64,000 nucleotides of DNA from Tetramitus jugosus (taxonomy: Eukaryota > Protista > Heterolobosea): positions 248,001 to 312,000 of the forward strand of contig OW569351.1 of assembly GCA_937625935.1 (NCBI GenBank). Reading direction: 5' to 3'. The position numbers and the translations under genes are program-made. The notes beneath the pieces are model-generated. The model saw only the letters and a list, made by a program, of their open reading frames with translations. It made no database searches and had not been told where the DNA came from. Of this stretch, positions 39,507 through 53,953 are shown piece by piece. How positions within the stretch are numbered: the first letter of the stretch is position 1; the number at the start of each line of letters is the position of its first letter.

Positions 39507-39613
39507 ACTTTCAAGAGTTCGAGCATTTGAGAGAATTGAATAAAAAAAAAACAGAATTTATCAAAAAACGACAACCACATGATCTGTGATTGAAACACTC
39601 AGCAACAGACAAG

Positions 39614-40990
39614 ATGAGTCACAATGAAAACCAACAACTGCTAAGCATACCATTGCTCGACGATGATGATGAAGATATTGGTGATGATGGTCACAATGCG
39701 GAGCGTGTTCCTCCCAACACACAACAAACAGTCAAGGATCTGTTGGACACGTTTAGACGCGAGAGAAGAGCAGAACACTTGAGTGAAATTCGTCAAATTC
39801 GAGACAACTTGCCCGAACAGCCCAAACAATTGAGTCCTACGAGTGCAACAACGTTTGCTTCTACTTCTGTTGTTGCTGCTGCTGCGACACCTTACCGAGT
39901 ATCGAGATCGGCCGTGTCATGTCCCTCGCCGACCACTCCCTCTCCGTCCAGTTCTGTAACTGCATCTGGAAGTGGAAACAAGCTTCGTGGTACATTCAAG
40001 CTCATTTCCTATCAGCAAGCATCTGCCAATGCGGCTGAGCTGAAGCGTAACAGTCCTCAACAACAACAAGTGAGTCCCATATCATCCACGTCACCTGGCT
40101 TTACTACTGCTGTTGGAAATTCTCCTCGTGTTTCTACACCGAGCTCGGTTAGTCCTCGTGTTTCGACACCAAACACTACTAGTCCTCGCGTTAACATCAC
40201 AACAACGAATAGCAGTCCGAGCAGTTCTGCTGTTTTGTTCAAGGGATCTCAACCAATACCTAGTGATGCTTCCACTGTGTTTGTTAGCAATAGACAGAAG
40301 GGAAATCCCATTCTTCAACACGTATCCAATATTAAGTTAGAGTATCGTGGTGATCTTTTGCCGGATTATATAATGTCTGAGCACATTTGTGCATTTTATA
40401 TTGCCTGTGATTATCATTTGAAAAATCCTCAGTACTTGTGGACCAGGATGGAACAATTGGGCAGTATGTTCAAATTGCGAGTGATTTTGTGTCATATAAA
40501 TACTGAAGAGCACGAAAAAGCAGTGATGGATATAACGAAGCTATGTATGGCTGCTGATTATACTCTGATATTATGCTTCAGTACCTTTGAGGTAGCGCGA
40601 TACATTGAAACCTATAAATTGTATGAGAATAAGTCTGCTCGAACGATTCAAGTCAAAATTGATGATCAGTTCATGCCTAGGTTAACGGACGCAATTACAT
40701 CTGTAAGGAGTGTGAACAAAACTGATGCTGCTACTTTGATCAACAACTTTGGTACGCTGCAAAATGTAATGGGAAGCTCGATTGAGGAACTATCGATTCT
40801 ACCTGGGTTTGGTGAGAAAAAGGTGAAGCGGTTCTATGAAATATTGCATGCTCCCTTTATTCCTGGGAGTGCAAAGAAGAGCTCCAAACCCTCACCTGGC
40901 ACGAAAAAGCAGACAAGCATATTATCGTTTTCTCAGCCTTTAAGTGGCTCGCTTCAAGAGGACAGCAATCCTGATGGAGACGAAGAGTGA
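39614..40990 (+). CDS. ERCC1: DNA excision repair protein ERCC1/Rad10
   Basis: VSNRQKGNPIL, EVARYIETYK, HhH2 motifs SVRSVNKTDA and PGFGEKKVKR. Confidence 0.93.
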   Translation: MSHNENQQLLSIPLLDDDDEDIGDDGHNAERVPPNTQQTVKDLLDTFRRERRAEHLSEIRQIRDNLPEQPKQLSPTSATTFASTSVVAAAATPYRVSRSAVSCPSPTTPSPSSSVTASGSGNKLRGTFKLISYQQASANAAELKRNSPQQQQVSPISSTSPGFTTAVGNSPRVSTPSSVSPRVSTPNTTSPRVNITTTNSSPSSSAVLFKGSQPIPSDASTVFVSNRQKGNPILQHVSNIKLEYRGDLLPDYIMSEHICAFYIACDYHLKNPQYLWTRMEQLGSMFKLRVILCHINTEEHEKAVMDITKLCMAADYTLILCFSTFEVARYIETYKLYENKSARTIQVKIDDQFMPRLTDAITSVRSVNKTDAATLINNFGTLQNVMGSSIEELSILPGFGEKKVKRFYEILHAPFIPGSAKKSSKPSPGTKKQTSILSFSQPLSGSLQEDSNPDGDEE

Positions 40991-40998
40991 TCATTTAC

Positions 40999-43900
40999 TT
41001 AGAACTTGTCATTTATTTGTGACAAAAGTTCAGCATTCGGCTTTTTACCTCCTGTTAATTTATGGATGAGAGAATGGATTTGGAGATAGTCATGCAGTTC
41101 CTTGTCCTTAATGGATATTTGAGAGTTCAAGGTTTGATTTTGATTTTTCATCGACTCAATCTGTGAATTCAAGTCCACATAAACCTGATTGTGATTCAAG
41201 GTTAGTTGGTCAATCTCGCTTTTGTAATTTTGCAGTTTTGATGTCAACTCAGCTATCTGATGTAGGTGGTATTCTTTGGACGTGGTCAGCTCCTGGCAGT
41301 ACTGCTGTAATTTCTGTAGTTTAGCTTCAAATTCGATACGACTTGTTTTCTCTTTGTTCAGTTCATTTTCGATGCTTCGTATTGTCCTTGATGATGATTC
41401 TCGATTCTCCATCATCTTCTTATGTATTGTTGTTAACATAATTAGCTTTTTGTAGGTGTCTTCCAATCTGATAAAAGTGGATTAGTAGCTGAAGAAACGT
41501 ACAAGGTCATTCATAAATTCTCATACTTTTCGCTCTTTCCTGTCAGATCTACTCTGCACTTTCCCAGTTCGGAGATAGTAGTTGTATGTTTGAGCTTTGT
41601 TTGTTCTAACTCAGATCTTAAGTTTTGGTTAGTTTTTTCCAGTTGCTCGAATGTTTGTTGTTGTGTCATGTTGGCTTGTTCCAAAGCAAGACTTAGTGTC
41701 TTGTTTTGCATTTCAAGTTCCCGAATTCTCTTTTCCAGAGCTATCTTCTCTCCTGTGTTGCTGAGATGATTTGCTTCCTCTTTCTTCTCCACTGTCCTAA
41801 GTGCAGATATGTTGTTGGATTGGTATTGTTGGAGATGGAACGCACAAGATTCGAGTTCTTGCATATTGAATTCTCCCAGATATTGAACACAATACAGAGC
41901 ATTTGAAAGGTTGGTCCTATTGATAATATCAGTGCAAATGATAGTCTTCATTTGATTGCCTTTGTGTACAATGAGCGCACCTGATAATATTTCTGAAAAT
42001 TTTGGTGCAGTTAGGGTATGCAATAGTTCATCTTCTTCCATTATATCGGATTTGATAATTAGGCTACAAGTACTAATGGCAATAGGCATGTTCTTAGTGG
42101 AAATGCTAAAATAGAACATTTTCTTAAGTTTGTCAGTGTACTTTGATTGTATTTTTCGCTTGGTAGACCTCGAAGCGAATAGAACAATACCTATTATAAT
42201 GATTGGTGAGTAGGTGTTGAGTAGTGAATGGAATGAACAAGCACATACTTTGAAGTAAAGTGACTAGCATGGCACATAAACCGCAATGCATGGAGCTCAT
42301 TGTTCTAGAATGATAAGTTATTTCAGATGATGATTGCGTTCTCAACCGCTCTAAACAGTGATCAATTGAATCAAAAATTGTTGATATAGAGTCTTGCATT
42401 GGCGGATCTAATTCACTACCAATAAGCTGATCACCTAGGTTCTACAAGGACGTTAGTTGTTGTAGTTATTTCAAATATAAAATTTCAAGCCATACCTTGT
42501 ATAATAGTATTAGAAGTTGTGCAGAAGAGATTGCACACTGCAAGTAGTCAATACTCTTTCGTTTACAGACACTGCACTGCTCTGCACAAGTAGATATCAT
42601 CAAGATTAGGTTGGATACGAGTCGAGATATAAGTGTTTCATCATTGTCTTTGTATCTGAGACAGGAGACGACATAATCAACCGTATCGGTGTTCTCTAGA
42701 AAGGCATTAATAACTACGATATTCTTCGATAATAAGTTCGGACAATCTGATTCTGACAGAAGTTGCAGTATTCTCAAAATGTTGGCATCCAAGTTTTGAT
42801 ATTTGGATAACAATGTACCTGTTGAGGGATTGCCTAAAAAACATCGTAACATATTAATAGCATAGAATGCTTGCTCATATCGAATGGGTGTTATGACTTC
42901 GATGCATGGCTGTGGTTCAAACGGATCAGTCATGGCAGACAAGAGCCGAAAATTCAACTGAAAGGTTTGTTGAATATTTTGCTTACTGAACACTTTTTCA
43001 CCTAGTTGTGTGGCCATCGATATTGCTGATGTGTTCTGCTTAGAAGCTTCTTGTACTTCTGCAATATATGATTGATTATCCTTGTTTCTTAATGTAAGGG
43101 CCGAGAGGCATGTTAGAGCGTAGATTACAATGCTATGGAAAGAGAGAACTGTGAGTAATGTTGAAATAGCTTATTGCCTGAGTACATAAACTTACTTGAT
43201 ATTTTGTGCTGTTAGAAACTGTATGAGAGCTTTGTACAGATTTGTGCGTGTATTCTCAGGGAACTGATCAATATAAAACGTCTGGAAATGATATCGATTC
43301 TCTGTTGTGTTATTGAAAGATACAATGTGCGCTAAAATTGAGAGTGCTCTATGTTGAAGGCTAGATGACAGTAGTCAGCAATCTATTGTCTCGAAAAAAA
43401 AAGACAAGTTGGAAAAAGATTACTTACCAGTTGTTATCATTGCTCGTGATTAAGTCCAACAATGAGTTGATAATTGCATGACTCATGTCCGTATTCAACA
43501 CATGGCTATAAAACTCGCGCGTATAATAGTGACTCCACACTTGAATAAAAGCGAGAATGCGGTTCATGAACAGCAATGTTTCATTCGAATGAGACACCTT
43601 TGTATTTGCGTGAGTTAAATCGACCAGTTGATTGTAACAAAAATACAACATGTTATAAAACTGATCTGTTGTTGTCATCAAATAATGACAGAGATAAGGC
43701 TCGTTTCCAATCAGAAACACTAAAATAAATAAGGAATTGGAAGCAAATCGATGAACGAGGCACATTTCGAGCACTAACTTCAAAAAGGATTGAATCACCT
43801 CTTGCACTTCAACATTTTGTTTCTGTAGACAAGATAAAAACACAAGTATTCAGTAAATGTAGATCCAACAACACTGCATAACCGATAACATAAACAACTT

Positions 43901-44236
43901 GTGGATCCTTACATGAATTTCATCATACAATTGTATTGCATTCTTCATTGTGAGCATTCCCAAATGTTCTCGTATGACCACACACAACTCGGACAATCTC
44001 TCATCTAAAATATTCAAAGAATCTGGTGTGCCGTTCTTTGTCACACTCACATAAGCACTCACAACTGATCGAATCGCATCAACAAACGCACGTTCAGCCA
44101 CAGATTGCAGGTTGCAGCTTTGACCACGTCTTCTCCGCCTTCTGGTCGTACTGGGAATAAAGGATTGGTTGATTCTGGATACGAGTTTTGTTCCACTGGG
44201 TGGTGTGAGCAAAAGACTCACGGAATCGTCGTTCAT
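40999..44236 (-). CDS. CIP2A: CIP2A-like armadillo plus coiled-coil protein (7 exons: 44236-43913, 43822-43428, 43360-43196, 43132-42496, 42441-42249, 42190-41527, 41467-40999)
   Basis: Six GT-AG introns join in frame. IVIYALTCLSALTL..GEKVFSKQNIQQTFQL and C-terminal IHSLIHKLTGGK match recalled human CIP2A segments (VVFALSILSSLTL..GEKLF..NIHQTFQL; MIHSLSGGK). Confidence 0.78.
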
Positions 44237-44338: not shown

Positions 44339-47300
44339 TTATTTGAGTTTGGTTTTCCAAAAGTGAGCCAACAAGAGATAGTCACCTTCAAGGCAGCCCT
44401 TACGACTAATTTCTTCGATGTGCTTGTCTGTGAGTACTCGTTTTGCTTTGTGATGCACCTTAGTGAAAGGGTCGGTTTCCGCGAGGAGATGAGAAGGTGA
44501 CCGTGGAAGGTTAGGTATCTCCTTACTCATCAATTGCATTAGTGCATCAAACACTATGTCGTTGTCAGAGATACTGCCTAGTTCGTATTTGCCATGAATT
44601 TGCAATGTAATGAATGAGTGGTTATGCTTCTCTGGTTTGAGTAGGCCAATGAGCTTGGAGATGATGTCATCAGTGTCGTTGTACTTGGAAAGAACATAGA
44701 CAATTGACTCGATTGCATTCCTCCGAATATCGATATGGTACTTGGAGTCTCCAACTGTTTCGATAATGTAAATCATATATCGTTTCGTGAGTGGCAAGTG
44801 GCGAAGTACCTTGGCACATGCTATGCGCGTAGAAGTGTCACGGTGGTTATGAATCAGATTGATCACATTGATAATCACACTATTCATGGTTTCGTCTGAT
44901 AATAGACAATTGTTGAGAAGCCATGTTAGTACAGTTGGAAGTTGTTCGATTATTTCGGCTTGCACAAAGTCATTCGAATCTCGTGAGCTCTCTTGAATAC
45001 AAGAGAACACGACAAGGTTCGCCATTTGAATTTGGAAGTCAAAGACAGTTTCAGGATGTACGATATTTGGATTAAATAATAAGTCTGAACAAGCTCGTAT
45101 CGCCTCTCTTCGAACATCGAACTTCTCATGCTTTGTGCAGTTCATAAGTATGCCAAGCAACTCTCGATCATGCGATGGACGGGTTACTTGATGAATTAGA
45201 AATATTAGTGTGCTTAGGCACTTGAGGATTGAACACTCAACATTGTTGGTATCAATCATCCGAAAATAGTGCATGGCCATATCTGTGACTAACCCATCAT
45301 CGTGAGATGGCATTTCCAGAAGACAGTTGACAGATTTATCTCGGATAATCCAATCTCTCGGGAATAAAGCAAGTAACTTCTGTTTTACCTCTCGTTCTTT
45401 GGTCAAATGGAAGCCAGAACGTAACACTATCGATAACGCATCGCACATATGCATCCAGAAAGATCGATCTTTTCGGAGATCGGAGCTTAAAAACATATCA
45501 ACAATCTCTTGATCTTCGTTTAGAGCATGCTTGATCGCACCGAGTGCATATCCACATAAACTGTAGGGCTCACCAAATGCTTTATAGAGAGCACTTGTAA
45601 TTCTCGTTTTTTGTTCGTCATTAGAGAAAAAGATAGCTCGTCTCTCGATTAATATCGACAAGATTTCATATCTGGTGTGGAGCTTAAACGAATCTAAACT
45701 CTTATAGTCCAGGAGGGAGATATTCAGAGATGTTAAAAATATTTCGACAATCAATTTGCAACACTGCTGACTAATATTGCTTGCGCAATACTTTAGACAG
45801 ATTACAGCTGCCTCTTCACTGGCAAATGTTGTCCATCGATAATGGGGACTATTCCTAATGAACGTAATGAGTACTGAAACAAGGCGTTTAACGAGATCAG
45901 TATATTCTGGAGGACTCAAGTCCAGTTGACTCAAAATGCGTAATATCATAGTCACTCGTTTCAGATAACCCTGCCTAAGAGTTTGTTCTGTGGGAGGAGT
46001 TTCACTTAGAGTATTTATGCCATGCGTTATCAATACTGACACATTTGCTTTCGTACCCAACAATATAAAAAAGTCAGCTAAAGCATCAGCATGTACTCCA
46101 TTATCATTTCCTTTCGATAGTGCTAACTTGTATATAATCTCAGATATTGAGTTGTGGGAGTTGTAAAGATTCCACATTGAATGTGTTAACCTCCTTATGT
46201 TTTGGTTGTGATGCATGATACCATCAATAATGATTCGTTGTTTCCTCTTCGATGATAGATGGTATATAATTTCGCGCATAGAGTGTTCGTTTTGTCTTTG
46301 ACTATCTTGGATGAGTTTAAGAAGCACACTTTCATATGTAAAATCGTGTTTCTTGGCCGATAGGAGTGCATAACAAAAAACCACAAACTGATGAACAGGA
46401 AGGTCCTGGGACAAAAATATGAAAACCTCTTTGTACCATACATCTGTCACAAATTTCACAACCTCATTCACAGTTTCGAGATGGACCTTTGGCAAGCTAT
46501 CTTTGAATGAGATCGCTTTGAAGAAGTCAGAGAAACTCACTTGGCGTTTTCTAGTATGCCTCTCTATTCTTTCTTCACTTTTCTCACCTGCGCCTTTCAT
46601 CATTTCTTTTATGATCCCTCGTTTCCATTGCTGAGACACTAAATACTCTTGAAATGATAAGTGTGAGAATCGATACCGCTTTTGTTCGAATGAAGGAGTA
46701 GGGGTAATAATTGCAAACTTGCCATCATCAATCATCTCCTGAATATCACTCCAGATTTGTTGTAATTCTTTTGGACACTCAAGCACCTGTTCTTCTGAAA
46801 AGTATACCATCCGACGAGTGTGAAGAATCTCGGAAAGAGCAATAATAAGCTCATAGATCCTAGTTCTTTGCTTCTTCAACTCATCCGCTTGTACTCTAAC
46901 TGCACCGATAACCCTCAATCTTTTGAAATGAGCATTTAACATGCTTTCTACAGCTTGATGATATATTTCTGATCTATTTGTGGGTAAAGCCTTTTCAGCC
47001 TTATATAAATTAATAAGGAGGGAGAGTAACATTGGAGTGCGTGCGAGATCAGAATATAATCCACTTCGTAGCACACTCAAAAATTCTTCCTCAGTGACAC
47101 CTCTCTTCTTTGACACTTCAATTTGCATATCAATCGATAGTGGTAGTAATTTAGCAGTAACAAATCCCATGTGAGATAATTGAGAGCTAATTCGAGATGT
47201 AATTATCAAACGATGCTTTGTGTGCGTGCCAATGAATTGTAGTAACCGTTCCTCAATTAATCGTTTGGCCTCTCTCGAGCAGGATTCGTCAAGACCATCA

Positions 47301-49612
47301 CACAGCAACAAAATGCGTCCCTTAGTGATCGACCGTAACAGAAATGATTGTATCTCTTCATTGTATTGTATTTGGTTGACTGAATGAAGAACTTGAATAT
47401 CGAACTCAGTTTCATCATTCAATTGTTGTGACAGGAGCGACACACTCAGCAAAATAGGAACATAATAATCATTGTTCTCAACGTCTCGATTGATCTGCTT
47501 CTCTGTCAGATATCGTTTCGCTAGATTGTACATGACCATACGTAGCAACGTAGTTTTTCCGCTCGCTGGCGAACCATAAGCCAGAACAGCTCTGTTCTGA
47601 TTATGGATAATAAAGTCAGCTAAATTCAACACGGAAATGCTATTTACATTCTCTGAAGTATCTAGCAGAATATTAGGATCAACATCCATATCTGATTCTG
47701 TTTGCTCACCGGTTGACTCGGATTCTGTGAATCCATAAAAATCAGCAGAAAGCGCTTTATCTTCGGTCGCTAACGAAGTCTCTACAGGATACACCTGAGA
47801 ATCACTCGGAAGGAATACTTCTAATGGAATGCACTCATCTTCTATTGACAATTGTCCATTATTGAAAATATCTCGGATGTATCCATCGTGCTGTACAATC
47901 ATTTTCATATATGCATCGAATGTGTTGTTATATTTCTCGTCACTAATTTCTTTTGGGACAATGATAGAATCGCGACAATTGCCTGAATCTCCATACTTTT
48001 CTACTTTCTCCAGCAACAGAGATGTGAAAGGAAATCCATATCGCTCACAACACTCTGAAAAAACATAAATTGTCACGTATAGTTCACCATTCTTGCGTTC
48101 AGAGGCAAGTAGTTTTCTCAATCCCTTATTACAAAGGCCATTCAAGCGCCCAAAGGCAGCACAGTATGATGAATGAAAAAGTCCCCAAGATAAATTATCT
48201 CGCACATCACTGCTCTCGAAATGACGAACCCAAAAGCTCCTGGCTTCAACCATTTCATAGAAAAGGGAATCTATCGTACTCACAAGTAATGGAGCTGAGG
48301 ACCATTCATAATTCATTGAAGGGCGCTGGTCTTGAGTTGATATCTCATCCTGAATTGGAGTATGGGGAGTCGAAAAGCTTTTGGGATTCACATTAATGTA
48401 TGCGCGATGAGGATCATCGATATATTGTACAATTTCTGAGGCATTGACTCGATCAACTGGGTTGTATGCCAAACATTCGAACATTATATTACACAACTTT
48501 TGAGTCTGGTCACAGTATAGATAATTATACAACTGGATGCGTTCTTTTTTGTTCGTTTCCTCGAACGTCAGTTTCATTCTGTGTTTGTTCAGCACTGAAA
48601 GCAACTCCAGGTCAGAATACATGAGCCGATTTGATTCCATATGATTTGCCAACAACAATTCTAATATAATCATTCCTAATGACCATATATCTGTTGAACT
48701 GTCATGACCGAGAGCTCGTGCATTTTCGGGTGATTGATACAGCGGCGTACCCGTATTTGTCAATGCTAAATCGCTCAATAGTTGCTTTCCCATTCCAAAA
48801 TCTGCAATTTTAATCTGGGACCTATTTAGGTTATCTTCAGTCCAATTAACTCTGAATTCTACTGTTTGTGGTGAGCTGCTCCCTACATCACTCTTTCTTG
48901 GGTAAAATATAATTAAATTCTCTGGTTTGATATCTCGATGAATAATTTCGTTCTGATGCAAATAGTTTAATCCCAATGCAATTTGACGCACCCATCGAAC
49001 AATATGATGAACATTGTAGTGATGCCTCTTCATGAATGTTTTTAAATTTGGTCCATCCACATATTCCATGCAGTACCGTATCATTGTACTCGTAAAATAT
49101 TCATCTTCATCGCTATTGGTTGCTTCTTGTTCTTCTTCTTCGTGTTGTTGTTCAATCCCATCATCATTCGTTTTCTCTTCCTTCTTCGAATGAGCGGCGG
49201 TCGTACTTTGTCGTTGCTGGAACGTAAACAATGAATGTTCATTCTCCCGATACTTTTCATACCAATACGCATAATGTTCAACAATATTCTCATGTCTCAA
49301 GCTCAATAAACGATCATTGAATTTGGAATAGTGTCCCAAGAGAAGATGATCCGTGGAACAATCAACTGTTTTGATGGCTACAAGTTTTGTCATTTCACTC
49401 TTGTTCATCTCCACCTCCACATTGTTTTCGTTATCCGTCATTATCATTGTTTTGAATGGATTGTGTGGTGGTGATGGTGAGAGAGGGAGTTCTTCGTAGA
49501 GTGACACACCACCCTCTCTGCCCTTTCCTAGTCTCTTAACGAATTGAAAGCTACGTCCATTGTGAGTGAGAACTAACGAAGAAGAACTGCTGTTGTTTGT
49601 CGTGATGGTCAT
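44339..49612 (-). CDS. NLR-like STAND protein: Ser/Thr kinase - EF-hand-like - NACHT NTPase - HEAT/ARM repeats
   Basis: Kinase: GKGREGGV, VAIK, HRDIKPEN, DFG, GTPLYQSPE, DIWSLG. NACHT: Walker A GSPASGKTT, Walker B LLLCDGLDE, LIITSR, LARTPMLL, RFSHLSFQEYL. HEAT-like: VRREAIRAC, TRIACAKVL, IRRNAIESI. First ATG at 49612. Confidence 0.88.
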   Translation of the reverse strand: MTITTNNSSSSSLVLTHNGRSFQFVKRLGKGREGGVSLYEELPLSPSPPHNPFKTMIMTDNENNVEVEMNKSEMTKLVAIKTVDCSTDHLLLGHYSKFNDRLLSLRHENIVEHYAYWYEKYRENEHSLFTFQQRQSTTAAHSKKEEKTNDDGIEQQHEEEEQEATNSDEDEYFTSTMIRYCMEYVDGPNLKTFMKRHHYNVHHIVRWVRQIALGLNYLHQNEIIHRDIKPENLIIFYPRKSDVGSSSPQTVEFRVNWTEDNLNRSQIKIADFGMGKQLLSDLALTNTGTPLYQSPENARALGHDSSTDIWSLGMIILELLLANHMESNRLMYSDLELLSVLNKHRMKLTFEETNKKERIQLYNYLYCDQTQKLCNIMFECLAYNPVDRVNASEIVQYIDDPHRAYINVNPKSFSTPHTPIQDEISTQDQRPSMNYEWSSAPLLVSTIDSLFYEMVEARSFWVRHFESSDVRDNLSWGLFHSSYCAAFGRLNGLCNKGLRKLLASERKNGELYVTIYVFSECCERYGFPFTSLLLEKVEKYGDSGNCRDSIIVPKEISDEKYNNTFDAYMKMIVQHDGYIRDIFNNGQLSIEDECIPLEVFLPSDSQVYPVETSLATEDKALSADFYGFTESESTGEQTESDMDVDPNILLDTSENVNSISVLNLADFIIHNQNRAVLAYGSPASGKTTLLRMVMYNLAKRYLTEKQINRDVENNDYYVPILLSVSLLSQQLNDETEFDIQVLHSVNQIQYNEEIQSFLLRSITKGRILLLCDGLDESCSREAKRLIEERLLQFIGTHTKHRLIITSRISSQLSHMGFVTAKLLPLSIDMQIEVSKKRGVTEEEFLSVLRSGLYSDLARTPMLLSLLINLYKAEKALPTNRSEIYHQAVESMLNAHFKRLRVIGAVRVQADELKKQRTRIYELIIALSEILHTRRMVYFSEEQVLECPKELQQIWSDIQEMIDDGKFAIITPTPSFEQKRYRFSHLSFQEYLVSQQWKRGIIKEMMKGAGEKSEERIERHTRKRQVSFSDFFKAISFKDSLPKVHLETVNEVVKFVTDVWYKEVFIFLSQDLPVHQFVVFCYALLSAKKHDFTYESVLLKLIQDSQRQNEHSMREIIYHLSSKRKQRIIIDGIMHHNQNIRRLTHSMWNLYNSHNSISEIIYKLALSKGNDNGVHADALADFFILLGTKANVSVLITHGINTLSETPPTEQTLRQGYLKRVTMILRILSQLDLSPPEYTDLVKRLVSVLITFIRNSPHYRWTTFASEEAAVICLKYCASNISQQCCKLIVEIFLTSLNISLLDYKSLDSFKLHTRYEILSILIERRAIFFSNDEQKTRITSALYKAFGEPYSLCGYALGAIKHALNEDQEIVDMFLSSDLRKDRSFWMHMCDALSIVLRSGFHLTKEREVKQKLLALFPRDWIIRDKSVNCLLEMPSHDDGLVTDMAMHYFRMIDTNNVECSILKCLSTLIFLIHQVTRPSHDRELLGILMNCTKHEKFDVRREAIRACSDLLFNPNIVHPETVFDFQIQMANLVVFSCIQESSRDSNDFVQAEIIEQLPTVLTWLLNNCLLSDETMNSVIINVINLIHNHRDTSTRIACAKVLRHLPLTKRYMIYIIETVGDSKYHIDIRRNAIESIVYVLSKYNDTDDIISKLIGLLKPEKHNHSFITLQIHGKYELGSISDNDIVFDALMQLMSKEIPNLPRSPSHLLAETDPFTKVHHKAKRVLTDKHIEEISRKGCLEGDYLLLAHFWKTKLK

Positions 49613-49844
49613 GTTGTTGTTTGTTTGGTGTTGGTACCTCCAAACACAAAGTGTACAGTGCAATAGATTAGCTAAGTGGAGTTGTTTGACTGTGTGATGT
49701 AGTGGTGGGAGTGATCTCTTTTCTCGACACCTGTTGCGAGCTTTCACTTGGCTTGTCAAACGAGGAACACGCCCCGAAATCGTCATTTTCCCGAACAATA
49801 ATAGCTATTTGGTCCGGAATGGAGTTTCTTTCCAGAGCAATAAA

Positions 49845-50771
49845 ATGGTGGAGGACGAAACGAAAAGTGCACCTTCCCCGAATGATGATGATGTGCTACT
49901 ACACTTTAGTGAAACATGTGTCATCTGTTTGAATGATGAGATTGAGGAGCCTTGCATGTTGCTTCCCTGCTATCACTCGTTCTGTTGGAGCTGTATTCAA
50001 TCTTGGCTTCGACAACAATCCTTTTGTCCCTTGTGCAAGACACGACCTACACATCTGATTCACAATATTCAATCATCCGACCGTTATGAAAAGAGGATTT
50101 TGTTGTCACATGGGACTGACACTTCAAGATCACAAACTGTTGTGTCAAACACAGATCAGAGAAGAGAGATTGCAGAAGACGAAGAAGGGAGTCTTGAGGA
50201 TGATGAGGACATGTATGATGACGATGATAGCTATGGGTACAATGATAGCTCTGATGAGTACGATTATGCGTTGGCAGAGTCATACGATGATATCAAAGAA
50301 CACGACGATACTGGTAATGCGAGCGGCAATAGTGGCGGTGCAAATCGTTCATATATGGATCATAGAAGACAAGTGTACAGGCAGAAACTGCAGTGTGTTG
50401 TTGATGTCGATCGTGTGCATAAGTTAATGAAAACACAACGTTTTTCAGTGTCGTACTACAAGCGCATGGAACCAGTGATTGGTCCAAAGATTCGAGATTG
50501 GATCAATAGAGAACTTTGTGTGATCAATGATGACTCAATGTTGCCCGGCATCAATGACATGTTATGCAATTTGGTTGTATCCCTTCTGAGTCGCATCGAT
50601 ATCGTTACACAGAGTGAAAGCTTTCTTGCACAGCTCCAGAGCTATTTTGTGAATGAATCTGATGCACAGATATTTGTGCGAGAACTAAGTCTTTTTGTGC
50701 AGAGTGACCTCTCCATCAAACAGTATGATCATGCCTGCCAATACAAAAACCTGCTTGAGTGTCAGAACTGA
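49845..50771 (+). CDS. Topors-like C3HC4 RING E3 ubiquitin ligase
   Basis: RING CVIC..PCYHSFCWSCI..CPLCK followed by LIHNIQS. RRQVY, IRDWINREL and FVRELSLFVQSDLSIKQYD are typical of Topors-like proteins. First ATG at 49845. Confidence 0.82.
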   Translation: MVEDETKSAPSPNDDDVLLHFSETCVICLNDEIEEPCMLLPCYHSFCWSCIQSWLRQQSFCPLCKTRPTHLIHNIQSSDRYEKRILLSHGTDTSRSQTVVSNTDQRREIAEDEEGSLEDDEDMYDDDDSYGYNDSSDEYDYALAESYDDIKEHDDTGNASGNSGGANRSYMDHRRQVYRQKLQCVVDVDRVHKLMKTQRFSVSYYKRMEPVIGPKIRDWINRELCVINDDSMLPGINDMLCNLVVSLLSRIDIVTQSESFLAQLQSYFVNESDAQIFVRELSLFVQSDLSIKQYDHACQYKNLLECQN

Positions 50772-51384: not shown

Positions 51385-53165
51385 ATGATCCAAAGAAAGC
51401 TACACATACAGCGCAGAAGCAACAACAGCAATGGATCAACTGGTGCTAGCAAGAATGCACCTGGTAGTTCATCTATCAAAAGCATTGGCACCTCCATTTC
51501 GCATCAATTATCACAGCAGCATCAAGCATCTTTGCCTTCCTCCCTACACAGCTCTCGCTTCACTCTAAGGTCCACTCCGCTCACGTCCACAACATCTCCG
51601 CCTCCAACCACTTCCAACTATGGCATCAGTAACAACAGTAGTCCTTCCACTGCTGTGCCCATTTCACTCAAGCCTACCTATGCTTATTCATCACCATCTG
51701 CGAGTCACACACCAGTCAAAGAGCGTAACTCTTCATCATCGCCTCGTCCCACGACTAGAGAGCCCAGCAACAACTCCAATAGCAATTCGAATTACGCGGA
51801 ACGAATCGTGAACATTCCCTATCAAGAGCAACAACAAGCTTATCATCAGCATCAACACTATCGAAAAAGAAAACGAGGTGAATTGATATTCCACAGTAAT
51901 TTTGAGTCTGGTAACTTGGGAAAAGTGAAAACGATCAAGGCAGAGTGTGAATATGAACTTTCTATTCGCCCAGACACAAACAATCCAAACTATAGACTAT
52001 GGTACTATTTTAGTGTTGAAAATTGTAAGAAGAATCAAAGAGTAGTGCTATCGATTGTCAACTTTTCAAAAGCAAGAAGTCTGTATCGACAAGGTATGAC
52101 CCCATTGGTCAAATCAGATCAGAGACCATACTGGGAACGAATACCAGAGAAGCAAGTATTCTATTATCGCAATCCGAAATCAAAGTCATATATATTGAGC
52201 TTTGTATTTGTGTTTGACCGGGAAACCGACGTCTATTACTTCTCATACAGTTATCCCTATACGTAAGTTTCTCGTTGTTAAAGAGTTACATAAAATGCTC
52301 TTAGTGCTAACACCTGTGATATCTGACACATTTTAGTTATTCGGACCTGCAGCAGTTCCTATTTAATCTGGATTCCAAGAACCTGGACTATTATCGACGG
52401 GAATTATTGACAAAAACTGTGCATCAAAGAAGGCTCGACCTTTTGACGATCTCTGACTCTCATCCACTGAATCCCATGGGCACAAAGAAACAAATTGTGT
52501 TCATCACAGCTAGAGTTCATCCTGGTGAAACTCCTTCATCGTATATGGCTCATGGCATGATATCCTTCCTCGTCAGTAATCACCCAGACGCCAAGTTATT
52601 ACGAGAATATCTAATCTTCAAAATTATTCCAATGCTGAATCCAGACGGAGTCTATCTTGGAAATTACAGATGTTCTTCGTTAGGTCAAGATCTGAACCGG
52701 TTCTGGTTAAATCCAGAAGCTTGGGCCCATCCAACTATCAACGCCACGAGATCACTCTTGTTGGAGCTAAAGAACAGTTCGGATGCCTTTTTAGACTTCT
52801 TTATTGATATGCACAGTCACTCTGCTGCCACAAATGGCTTCATGTTTGTGAATCAGGTTGGAGACGACAAAAAGGATGATCAGCTGCTGTACCCAAAGTT
52901 GCTTGACATCAAAGCCAAAGAGTTTTCATTTTCTGACACTCGCTACTGCAAGGATGCATCCAAGTTGGGAACAGGAAGGAGAGCACTGGGAGAGATGTTG
53001 CAAGTCGCACCACACTGCTACACGCTTGAAGTATCCTTCTTTAGCTTCACTCAAGACATGTCGAAAAACGTGCCATTCACACAAGAAAGCTATCTCAACT
53101 TGGGTGTGAACGTAGCACTGACATTCATCGACTATTATAGATTGACCCATAAAAAGAGAAGATGA
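51385..53165 (+). CDS. AGBL4: Cytosolic carboxypeptidase 6-like tubulin deglutamylase (exons 51385-52262, 52337-53165)
   Basis: FESGNL, WYYF, YPYT|YSDL, ARVHPGETPSS, PMLNPDGV..GNYR, DLNR, DMHSHS, YTLEVSF. 74-nt intron with a CTAAC branch site. Confidence 0.88.
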
Positions 53166-53204: not shown

Positions 53205-53783
53205 TCATTCGTCTCCATCTTCAATGTCCTCGTCATCATCTCCATCATCCTCATCCCCATTCTCATCATCCTCCATCATATCATTCAAAATCTTAATCTT
53301 CAACGAACAACCATTACAGTTCACAATCATTGAATCAAATGAAATATCACCCGTCTCATTGTCCACTATGCGATCATCCAACAACAACTCATAGTGACTG
53401 CTGCACCTGCATGACCACTCAAACGTTTCCACCTTCTTGTCATTTACCTCTCTCAACTGCATCTCACTCAATTTCACATACTCTGAAATTTCACCAACCA
53501 TTGACTTGTGATGCTCAAAATGAGACTTTTCCAAATCTTGATTGTAGGCCCTCCGCTTTTGCGCATCACCCAGAATTTCAAATGCGTGACGAACCGAGAG
53601 AAACTGTTGCTCTGTTTGTTGTGAGCCTAAATGTTGGTTGCGATCTGGATGGTACAGCATCACCAATTGTCTGTACTGTTTCTTGATGTCTTGTTGTGTG
53701 ATTGTTGGCGAACCATTCTTTTGTTCATGGAAACTTGGCAATTGTAATACTTGATACAAATCTGTTCTCGAGGTCGTCATCAT
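53205..53783 (-). CDS. DPH4: Diphthamide biosynthesis J-protein DPH4/DNAJC24
   Basis: J-domain with HPD, and CSL Zn finger CRC...CNGCSL. First ATG at 53783. Confidence 0.88.
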   Translation of the reverse strand: MMTTSRTDLYQVLQLPSFHEQKNGSPTITQQDIKKQYRQLVMLYHPDRNQHLGSQQTEQQFLSVRHAFEILGDAQKRRAYNQDLEKSHFEHHKSMVGEISEYVKLSEMQLREVNDKKVETFEWSCRCSSHYELLLDDRIVDNETGDISFDSMIVNCNGCSLKIKILNDMMEDDENGDEDDGDDDEDIEDGDE

Positions 53784-53953
53784 GTAGTTTGCCTGGTGTG
53801 AAATTGTTTTTTGAGTTTCATCCAAAGAGAAAACTCCGGAACATCGCTTTTTTGGAAGAAGAAGAACAGTTTCAGAACTACAACAACAATGAGACCAGAG
53901 CATAAGTTTTTATTGTACCGGATTCCACATGAACCCCCATTAGGTTTGTTACT

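Follow-up and report, generated by a model that had tools for sequence, protein, structure and literature searches.

A predicted kinase, EF-hand, NACHT and HEAT protein of Tetramitus jugosus and its heterolobosean family

How free-living phagotrophs among the protists sense intracellular bacteria and giant viruses is largely an open question. Here we ask whether it is touched by a gene of Tetramitus jugosus, a soil heterolobosean amoeboflagellate that feeds on bacteria (PMC11106597). In the window that we analysed (the whole stretch of 64,000 nucleotides), positions 44339-49612 of the minus strand encode a protein with an N-terminal Ser/Thr kinase, a predicted EF-hand pair, a predicted NACHT domain and a predicted HEAT solenoid. 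Our preferred reading, to which we give a probability of about 45%, is a switch in which a STAND (signal transduction ATPase with numerous domains) module gates the kinase in response to a conserved danger cue, with the subfamily of this gene, A, possibly serving as an accessory sensor for a second subfamily, B. With this family the sensing question comes down to between one and three genes of amoebae that can be cultured, and the built-in kinase offers a direct readout, autophosphorylation, for ligand finding. Should its role turn out to be non-immune, it would be a further case of an NLR-type (NOD-like receptor) switch in ordinary cell signalling.

One expressed gene with a predicted NLR-type layout

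The open reading frame runs from the ATG at 49612 to the stop at 44339 (1757 residues), with neither intron nor internal stop. Its translation agrees with an earlier note, made from the sequence alone, which had described an intronless frame of about 5.3 kb and named motifs that all lie where it puts them. The kinase side shows the Gly loop (49528-49511), VAIK (49381), HRD (48940), DFG (48802) and SPE (48733); the NACHT side shows the pre-NACHT segment (47851-47816), Walker A (47575-47549), Walker B (47311-47285), ITSR (47203) and FSHLSFQEY (46669-46643). RNA contigs from two soil metatranscriptomes span 44444-49646 without joints, and both flanks have zero RNA depth but do have depth in DNA runs; as contigs with short flanks, they cover presence and continuity of the transcript, not its strand, level or exact ends. 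A single RNA contig (46593-49147) extends from the N-lobe of the kinase, by way of HRD, the linker and the two Walker motifs, to the winged helix, so that kinase and NACHT are one gene with one expressed transcript and not the separate genes that the earlier note had considered as an alternative.

Three other explanations of the frame were rejected. An upstream TTG start at 49798 is unlikely because the RNA contigs reach no further than 49646, 34 nt upstream of the ATG, and the added stretch would overlap a RING gene. An artefact or fused gene call is contradicted by the lack of stops, by the RNA contig that bridges kinase and winged helix and by the same domain order in all homologues; bacterial contamination is contradicted by host-like GC content, eukaryotic neighbours and the chromosome-level assembly. 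The parts of the gene, all on the minus strand, are as follows.

44339..49612, minus: whole gene, 1757 residues, kinase, EF-hand pair, NACHT (nucleotide-binding domain, NBD; helical domain 1, HD1; winged-helix domain, WHD; helical domain 2, HD2) and HEAT solenoid; subfamily A
48419..49549, minus: Ser/Thr kinase, NEK/ULK-like by sequence (residues ~22-398; Pfam Pkinase E 8e-31, motifs, matches to Protein Data Bank (PDB) sequences)
47993..48289, minus: putative EF-hand pair of the Cbl-TKB (tyrosine-kinase-binding)/STAT-linker type (residues ~442-540; structure searches and family conservation)
47807..47941, minus: predicted pre-NACHT helix and hairpin containing LSIEDECIPLEV (residues ~558-602; fold model, profile matches)
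47123..47617, minus: predicted NACHT nucleotide-binding domain (residues ~666-830; Walker A K686, Walker B D772-G-L-D-E776, sensor 1 R807)
46253..47122, minus: predicted HD1, winged helix and HD2 (residues ~831-1120; FSHLSFQEY is the NAIP-like signature as defined in PMC12258605)
44342..46252, minus: predicted HEAT-type alpha-solenoid and C-terminal helices (residues ~1121-1757; divergent; fold model)

Is the central domain a NACHT? Pfam NACHT (PF05729) matches it at E 7e-5, with 23.2 bits in hmmscan and 27 bits in the genome search against a curated cut-off of 26.7 (the paralogues score 30-36 bits), and HEAT_2 matches this protein only at E 0.02; a single-sequence PDB search with the NACHT gave no match. 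These weak matches were settled by a fold model. In the AlphaFold model of residues 560-1757 (mean pLDDT, the predicted local distance difference test, 69, from an alignment of 22 sequences), residues 560-1120 superpose on NLRC4 97-580, that is NBD-HD1-WHD-HD2, with Z 19.5 and a root-mean-square deviation (rmsd) of 5.8 over 424 aligned positions; NOD2 gives Z 19.0, NLRP3 is also matched, and animal NLRs overall fall at Z 17-19.5. The rest of the model aligns with the HEAT solenoids of importin-beta, CAND1 and SF3B1 at Z 14-15.6, values that for helical repeats identify the fold class only.

The motifs point the same way. Walker A, GxxxxGK[ST], is present at residues 680-688, and its GKT is kept in every full-length family member; Walker B, hhhhD[GAS]hDE, is at 768-776, and the NAIP-like FhHxxhQE[YF]hxA at 982-990, its final Ala being Ser here and Ala in most members. 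Walker B and the winged-helix motif agree with published NACHT (10.1101/2022.07.19.500537) and NAIP-like (PMC12258605) signatures, and the Walker A and B residues, together with the K, HRD and DFG residues of the kinase, are retained across members on contigs of 25-47% GC. As modelled, then, the central domain is a true NACHT with an NLR-type fold, followed by a HEAT solenoid. The NACHT that the earlier note had proposed is thus borne out by fold and motifs, as is its effector, NTPase and repeat layout: a single polypeptide carries effector, nucleotide-oligomerisation domain and repeats. The HEAT region shows no internal repeat similarity in self-comparison, in contrast to the hypervariable repeats of fungal NLRs (PMC4986451). 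It aligns with the protein P0025 (E 8e-14), which itself matches HEAT_2 at E 7e-20, and a T. jugosus paralogue, the C7 gene, matches HEAT_2 at E 1e-31.

The kinase and the putative EF-hand pair

The earlier note had called the kinase apparently intact, and this holds for most of it: the Gly loop, beta3 K81, HRD D227, catalytic-loop N232, DFG D271, SPE and activation-loop Thr 285, 287 and 289 are retained, and an acidic insert occupies residues ~130-175. It does not hold for the alphaC Glu, whose position, counted back from the HxNIV motif, is Phe98. At this position the three readable subfamily A kinases have F, Q and S; the C7 paralogue, Naegleria fowleri and the P0028 locus have E and Willaertia has D, all read by motif counting in few sequences. 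Subfamily A kinases may be weak or differently regulated, which we take as a lead. The closest solved kinases are NEK1 and ULK1/2, with STK33 and MEK1 also among the best PDB matches (ULK1 leading for this gene, NEK1/ULK1 for the C7 paralogue), and no RIPK is found among the best 60. By sequence the kinase is therefore NEK/ULK-like and not RIPK2-like, that is, not of the tyrosine kinase-like group (TKL), and the single-chain version of NOD-RIPK2 signalling suggested earlier is left as an analogy only. The family is not recovered as a single group in the kinase tree, so a separate kinase origin for subfamily A is possible. PADLOC and NCBIfam returned generic kinase matches and a weak EruA NACHT match far below cut-off.

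The genome holds many other kinase frames of ~1200-1300 residues, which suggest an expanded family; on C29, the kinase genes at 463568 (plus) and 13440 (minus), each close to one of the two ends, are identical in kinase-domain sequence.

The lack of the alphaC Glu in subfamily A kinases raises an alternative, in which the kinase, above all in A, would be an integrated decoy or pseudokinase acting as effector bait or scaffold, with output passing through the NACHT ring and the EF-hand domain. The large inserts in this kinase would suit such a role, and some NLRs of plants and fungi are known to carry an integrated kinase domain. We nevertheless think it distinctly unlikely: K81, HRD, the catalytic-loop Asn, DFG and the activation-loop Thr are all kept, the kinases of subfamily B are canonical, and the kinase sits at the effector position of a protein that contains no other effector.

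The earlier note had listed kinase, NACHT and HEAT correctly and omitted a domain between the first two. This segment (residues ~442-540) is conserved in the family and is modelled with pLDDT >90 over its core. Compared with 48,161 solved chains, it is closest to the Cbl TKB EF-hand (6xar 182-264; Z 8.8, rmsd 2.6, 81 aligned); the next chain follows at Z 7.3, and Dictyostelium STATa (1uus) gives Z 5.8. Cbl also leads in Foldseek (E ~0.2), in the atlas (TM, template modelling score, 0.44) and in nearly all hmmsearch rows (E ~0.3); an atlas feature search with the EF-hand domain gave no match. Each of these scores is modest, and the assignment depends on the agreement between searches, which points to a Cbl/STAT-type EF-hand pair.

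The Pfam scan and the EF-hand model show no SH2 in this protein, and a NACHT follows the EF-hand pair instead. The only SH2 match in the genome lies in another gene (C20:454634-457906; L040:472-2265, plus strand), which encodes a helical region, a Cbl_N2 EF-hand and the SH2, and so a Cbl-TKB-like protein, in which Pfam found no RING. Aligned to this gene by hhalign, our EF-hand segment gives a weak match (E 0.012, probability 3.6%). The canonical Ca2+ ligands of the second EF loop are not kept in the family, whereas the loop of the C20 gene has acidic ligands. The role of the pair would be structural or one of docking. As far as we found, an EF-hand without SH2 ahead of a NACHT is a domain graft that the literature searched does not describe.

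A small family under purifying selection

Is this one gene of a large receptor repertoire? In the T. jugosus assembly (26,350,207 bases) we found three members: this gene, the intronless C7 gene (24% identity to this one) and the intron-bearing C11 gene. Genes that share its order of domains were found in Willaertia magna (KAL9652529), N. fowleri (XP_044561468) and N. lovaniensis (C9374_000651), one in each; with Tetramitus included, a heterolobosean host is shown for three vahlkampfiid genera only. About 15 environmental contigs also carry homologues, several with introns and eukaryotic neighbours; spliced homologues (the C11 paralogue, L085 and others) were searched and placed exon by exon. 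Identity between paralogues and orthologues is 24-46%, and 55% between Naegleria and Willaertia. The C11 paralogue (L005:4450-7059) ends its Walker B in DGLDA instead of DGLDE and has a long kinase insert before DFG.

The family forms one clade (SH-aLRT, the Shimodaira-Hasegawa-like approximate likelihood ratio test, 99; 97/97 in a second tree of HD1-HD2), within which subfamily A (96/93) includes this gene on a long branch and subfamily B (87/97) comprises the C7, Naegleria and Willaertia genes. Besides T. jugosus, three further samples each contain a single A and a single B, the GC of whose contigs agrees (25/27%, 47/46% and 38/39%), which suggests an old, retained pair. Searches with NACHT, NPHP3_N, NB-ARC and family profiles, whose counts are lower bounds, revealed no large NLR repertoire; the other NACHT-family matches inspected were Orc1/Cdc6-like (L009) or had a Walker A only, and the three genes appear to make up all detectable NACHT-repeat genes of T. 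jugosus. The only other STAND found in the genome is a 1919-residue open frame (C43:151561-155403; L046, minus) with a kinase-like domain lacking HRD and DFG, an NB-ARC/AAA-type STAND and a helical region. We take it to resemble the N-terminal part of bacterial and fungal hybrid Ser/Thr kinase-ATPase-histidine kinases, a type that serves stress signalling in fungi.

The gene is under purifying selection. The 37 strain differences listed for the frame comprise 25 synonymous and 12 nonsynonymous ones, and the ratio of nonsynonymous to synonymous polymorphism (pN/pS) is 0.13; it is 0.11 in HD2/HEAT (25 listed variants). The sample consists of the 40 best-supported of ~130 strain differences, and a few selected sites could escape it. 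The earlier note had pointed to paralogue number and to diversifying selection in the HEAT region as checks. With three paralogues, neither self-similar repeats nor repeat homogenisation, and the HEAT ratio of 0.11 in this partial sample, the gene does not look like part of a rapidly diversifying NLR repertoire. Between species, conservation is lowest in the HEAT region, at 20% pairwise identity vs 33-40% in NBD, HD1 and WHD. Wild strains carry in-frame deletions of 3 and 6 bases at 49469, 49121-49130 and 47782, each of them within a linker or insert of low complexity.

The neighbourhood is ordinary. Head-to-head with the receptor gene lies a RING (C3HC4) gene (49734-50771, plus), with a likely start near 49845, ~230 nt from the ATG at 49612; we take its C-terminal part to be TOPORS/Psh1-like. 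Directly downstream is a multi-exon coiled-coil gene (40999-44236, minus) with a weak CIP2A_N match (E 3.6e-4), and further genes encode ERCC1/Rad10 (39590-40990), a cytosolic carboxypeptidase over two open reading frames (51385-53165) and a DnaJ-CSL zinc finger protein, Dph4-like (53205-53903). None of these neighbours, the RING and CIP2A-like genes included, is conserved among nine homologue loci, most of which give little upstream DNA.

Such a profile would also suit the same STAND-kinase switch in a housekeeping or developmental role, in which an endogenous nutrient, organelle or cytoskeletal signal would lead to encystment, the amoeba-to-flagellate change, autophagy or the cell cycle. The copy number of one to three in the genomes of Tetramitus, Naegleria and Willaertia, the purifying selection, the soil RNA found in the data of at least two studies, the NEK/ULK-like kinase, the housekeeping neighbours and, in the same genome, the C43 frame that resembles a stress-signalling type all fit. 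The earlier note had held out a conserved housekeeping orthologue as a possibility; the gene is indeed conserved in Heterolobosea, but no known function goes with it. The poor conservation of HEAT and an overall identity of 24-46%, low for a core housekeeping gene, speak against this role, and NAIP-like NACHTs with repeats are mostly linked to defence where they have been studied. On balance we hold it to be unlikely, but a serious contender.

Origin, proposed switch and known systems

From where did the NACHT come? The earlier note had found the pre-NACHT segment and the NACHT-HEAT pairing reminiscent of bacterial proteins, a link that our comparisons weaken. The pre-NACHT profile has its best matches among the tree neighbours of the family, with the picozoan P0180 at E 7e-9 and P0049 at E 2.5e-6, and matches none of the bacterial NACHT-HEAT proteins compared. 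In the NACHT tree, limited to sequences fetched for this analysis, the neighbours of the family, with moderate support (SH-aLRT 87-88), include one protein each from Picozoa and MMETSP together with eukaryote-like kinase-TPR/LRR (leucine-rich repeat), RCC1, ankyrin, UBA and U-box proteins, and the cyanobacterial, archaeal and fungal NACHT-HEAT proteins are placed elsewhere. By these comparisons the nearest NACHTs appear to be those of other protists, not of bacteria. The sister group (P0051, P0099, P0113, P0007, P0043, P0049, P0063 and P0172; L163, L041) combines eukaryote-like NACHTs with varied partners, among them C2-kinase-TPR-NACHT-LRR, TCAD9-NACHT-RCC1, NACHT-ankyrin, bromodomain-U-box-NACHT and NACHT-UBA, and is possibly an undescribed protist NLR-like radiation. 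No close relative was found in GTDB genomes, in a scan for close relatives only, or in viral contigs. A remote bacterial ancestry has been proposed for eukaryotic NACHTs in general (10.1101/2022.07.19.500537), and that of this family may share it.

These results bear on the idea of a fast-evolving pathogen or giant-virus receptor, recently derived from a bacterial NACHT-HEAT defence gene and signalling as a single-chain NOD-RIPK2. Bacterial NACHT-HEAT and kinase-NACHT proteins do exist, their NACHT is homologous, and some bacterial NACHTs are antiphage. The idea sits badly with a family that shows no expansion, no near-identical repeats and a HEAT pN/pS of 0.11, whose nearest NACHTs look eukaryotic with no close GTDB or viral-contig relative in the above scans, whose kinase is not RIPK2-like and whose EF-hand domain is of eukaryotic type, in a gene with host-like GC and intron-bearing homologues. 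We regard it as the least probable of the readings weighed here.

A family this small and old, with members in Naegleria too, has the look of a conserved switch for signalling and not of a pathogen detector in rapid evolution, which brings us back to the STAND-gated kinase. By analogy with NLRC4, NOD2 and Apaf-1, the HEAT solenoid and HD2 would hold an ADP-bound NACHT closed. As in NLRs, ligand binding at the solenoid would lead to nucleotide exchange and ring assembly, and the ring would cluster the N-terminal kinases for trans-phosphorylation of the activation-loop Thr and then of substrates; kinase activation driven by oligomerisation, as the earlier note had imagined it, is plausible on this analogy. 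Between kinase and ring, the EF-hand pair would act without Ca2+, as a spacer or for docking. More speculatively, this A gene might be a low-activity accessory sensor working with the better-conserved B kinase, as NAIP does with NLRC4. The intracellular cue would be a danger signal that changes slowly, either a guarded protein of the host or a conserved molecule of microbes, and not a variable effector, which would suit a bacteria-eating phagotroph. Most studied NACHT proteins act in defence, some bacterial ones against phage (10.1101/2022.07.19.500537), and the HRD-dependent signalling of the wheat Tsn1 kinase domain also speaks for such a switch; an immune role of the family is possible.

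Several observations weigh against this switch. A non-immune role would be just as compatible with the low copy number and the purifying selection, and expression in bulk soil RNA is evidence of presence, not of induction. The C11 paralogue shifts between trees and has no stable place, it is by GC alone that the two genes of a metagenomic A/B pair are placed in one organism, and the alphaC assignment depends on motif counting in a small sample. Finally, incomplete searches turned up no A member in Naegleria or Willaertia, so B is apparently able to stand alone. A bolder version is a heterolobosean inflammasome-like kinase ring, in which a weak A sensor would detect an intracellular bacterium or virus and nucleate a ring of B kinases, with the Cbl-type EF-hand coupling ring to kinase. 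We consider it improbable; if true, a NAIP/NLRC4-like division into sensor and helper would have evolved independently in Discoba.

How does the family compare with known systems? Kinase-headed STAND receptors have already been described in plants, fungi and bacteria, and NAIP-like NACHT-HEAT proteins in fungi and Rickettsiales. We found no paper on heterolobosean NACHT receptors or on this family in a literature search that left out most subscription papers. Within the literature that could be searched, the new features are a four-part architecture that includes a Cbl-type EF-hand, its conservation as a heterolobosean family and the A/B asymmetry. With animal NLRs (NLRC4/NAIP, NOD2, NLRP3) the family shares the predicted NBD-HD1-WHD-HD2 fold, the Walker B D-G-h-D-E, the winged-helix signature and the order of effector, NACHT and repeat. 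It differs in having HEAT instead of LRR and kinase plus EF-hand instead of CARD, PYD or BIR, in its identity of 12-16% and in the absence of a RIPK2-like kinase.

Fungal N-NACHT/HEAT NLRs also pair a NAIP-like NACHT with HEAT at few copies per genome, a pairing found in Rickettsiales too (PMC12258605), and PKinase is a rare N-terminal domain of fungal NLRs (PMC4986451). However, among canonical N-termini the Sordariales N-NACHT/HEAT proteins carry only sesB-like ones (PMC12258605), no EF-hand domain is present, and those of Neonectria and Clonostachys lie far from the heterolobosean family in the NACHT tree. In plant Pkn-NLRs (moss kinase-NLRs, wheat Tsn1) a kinase likewise heads a STAND receptor at the N-terminal effector position, and the Tsn1 kinase domain signals HRD-dependently (PMC11218826); these are an independent fusion, with NB-ARC and LRR where ours has NACHT and HEAT. 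What the plant Cbl-N NLRs take from Cbl is the four-helix bundle and not the EF-hand. The Cbl TKB and Dictyostelium STAT share with our protein the predicted fold of the EF-hand pair and its FW...V.W..F pattern, but there, as in the T. jugosus C20 gene, an SH2 follows, whereas here a NACHT follows and the Ca2+ ligands are not kept. Bacterial NACHT proteins, finally, number kinases among their effectors and HEAT among their sensors (Kibby et al., 10.1101/2022.07.19.500537), and they share the NACHT clade signature, the atlas look-alikes at 0.88-0.91 being bacterial Pkinase(-NACHT) clusters. They differ in an identity of 23-29% over the core only, in lacking the EF-hand domain and in not being the nearest group in the tree, and their antiphage activity is not transferable by analogy to the heterolobosean family.

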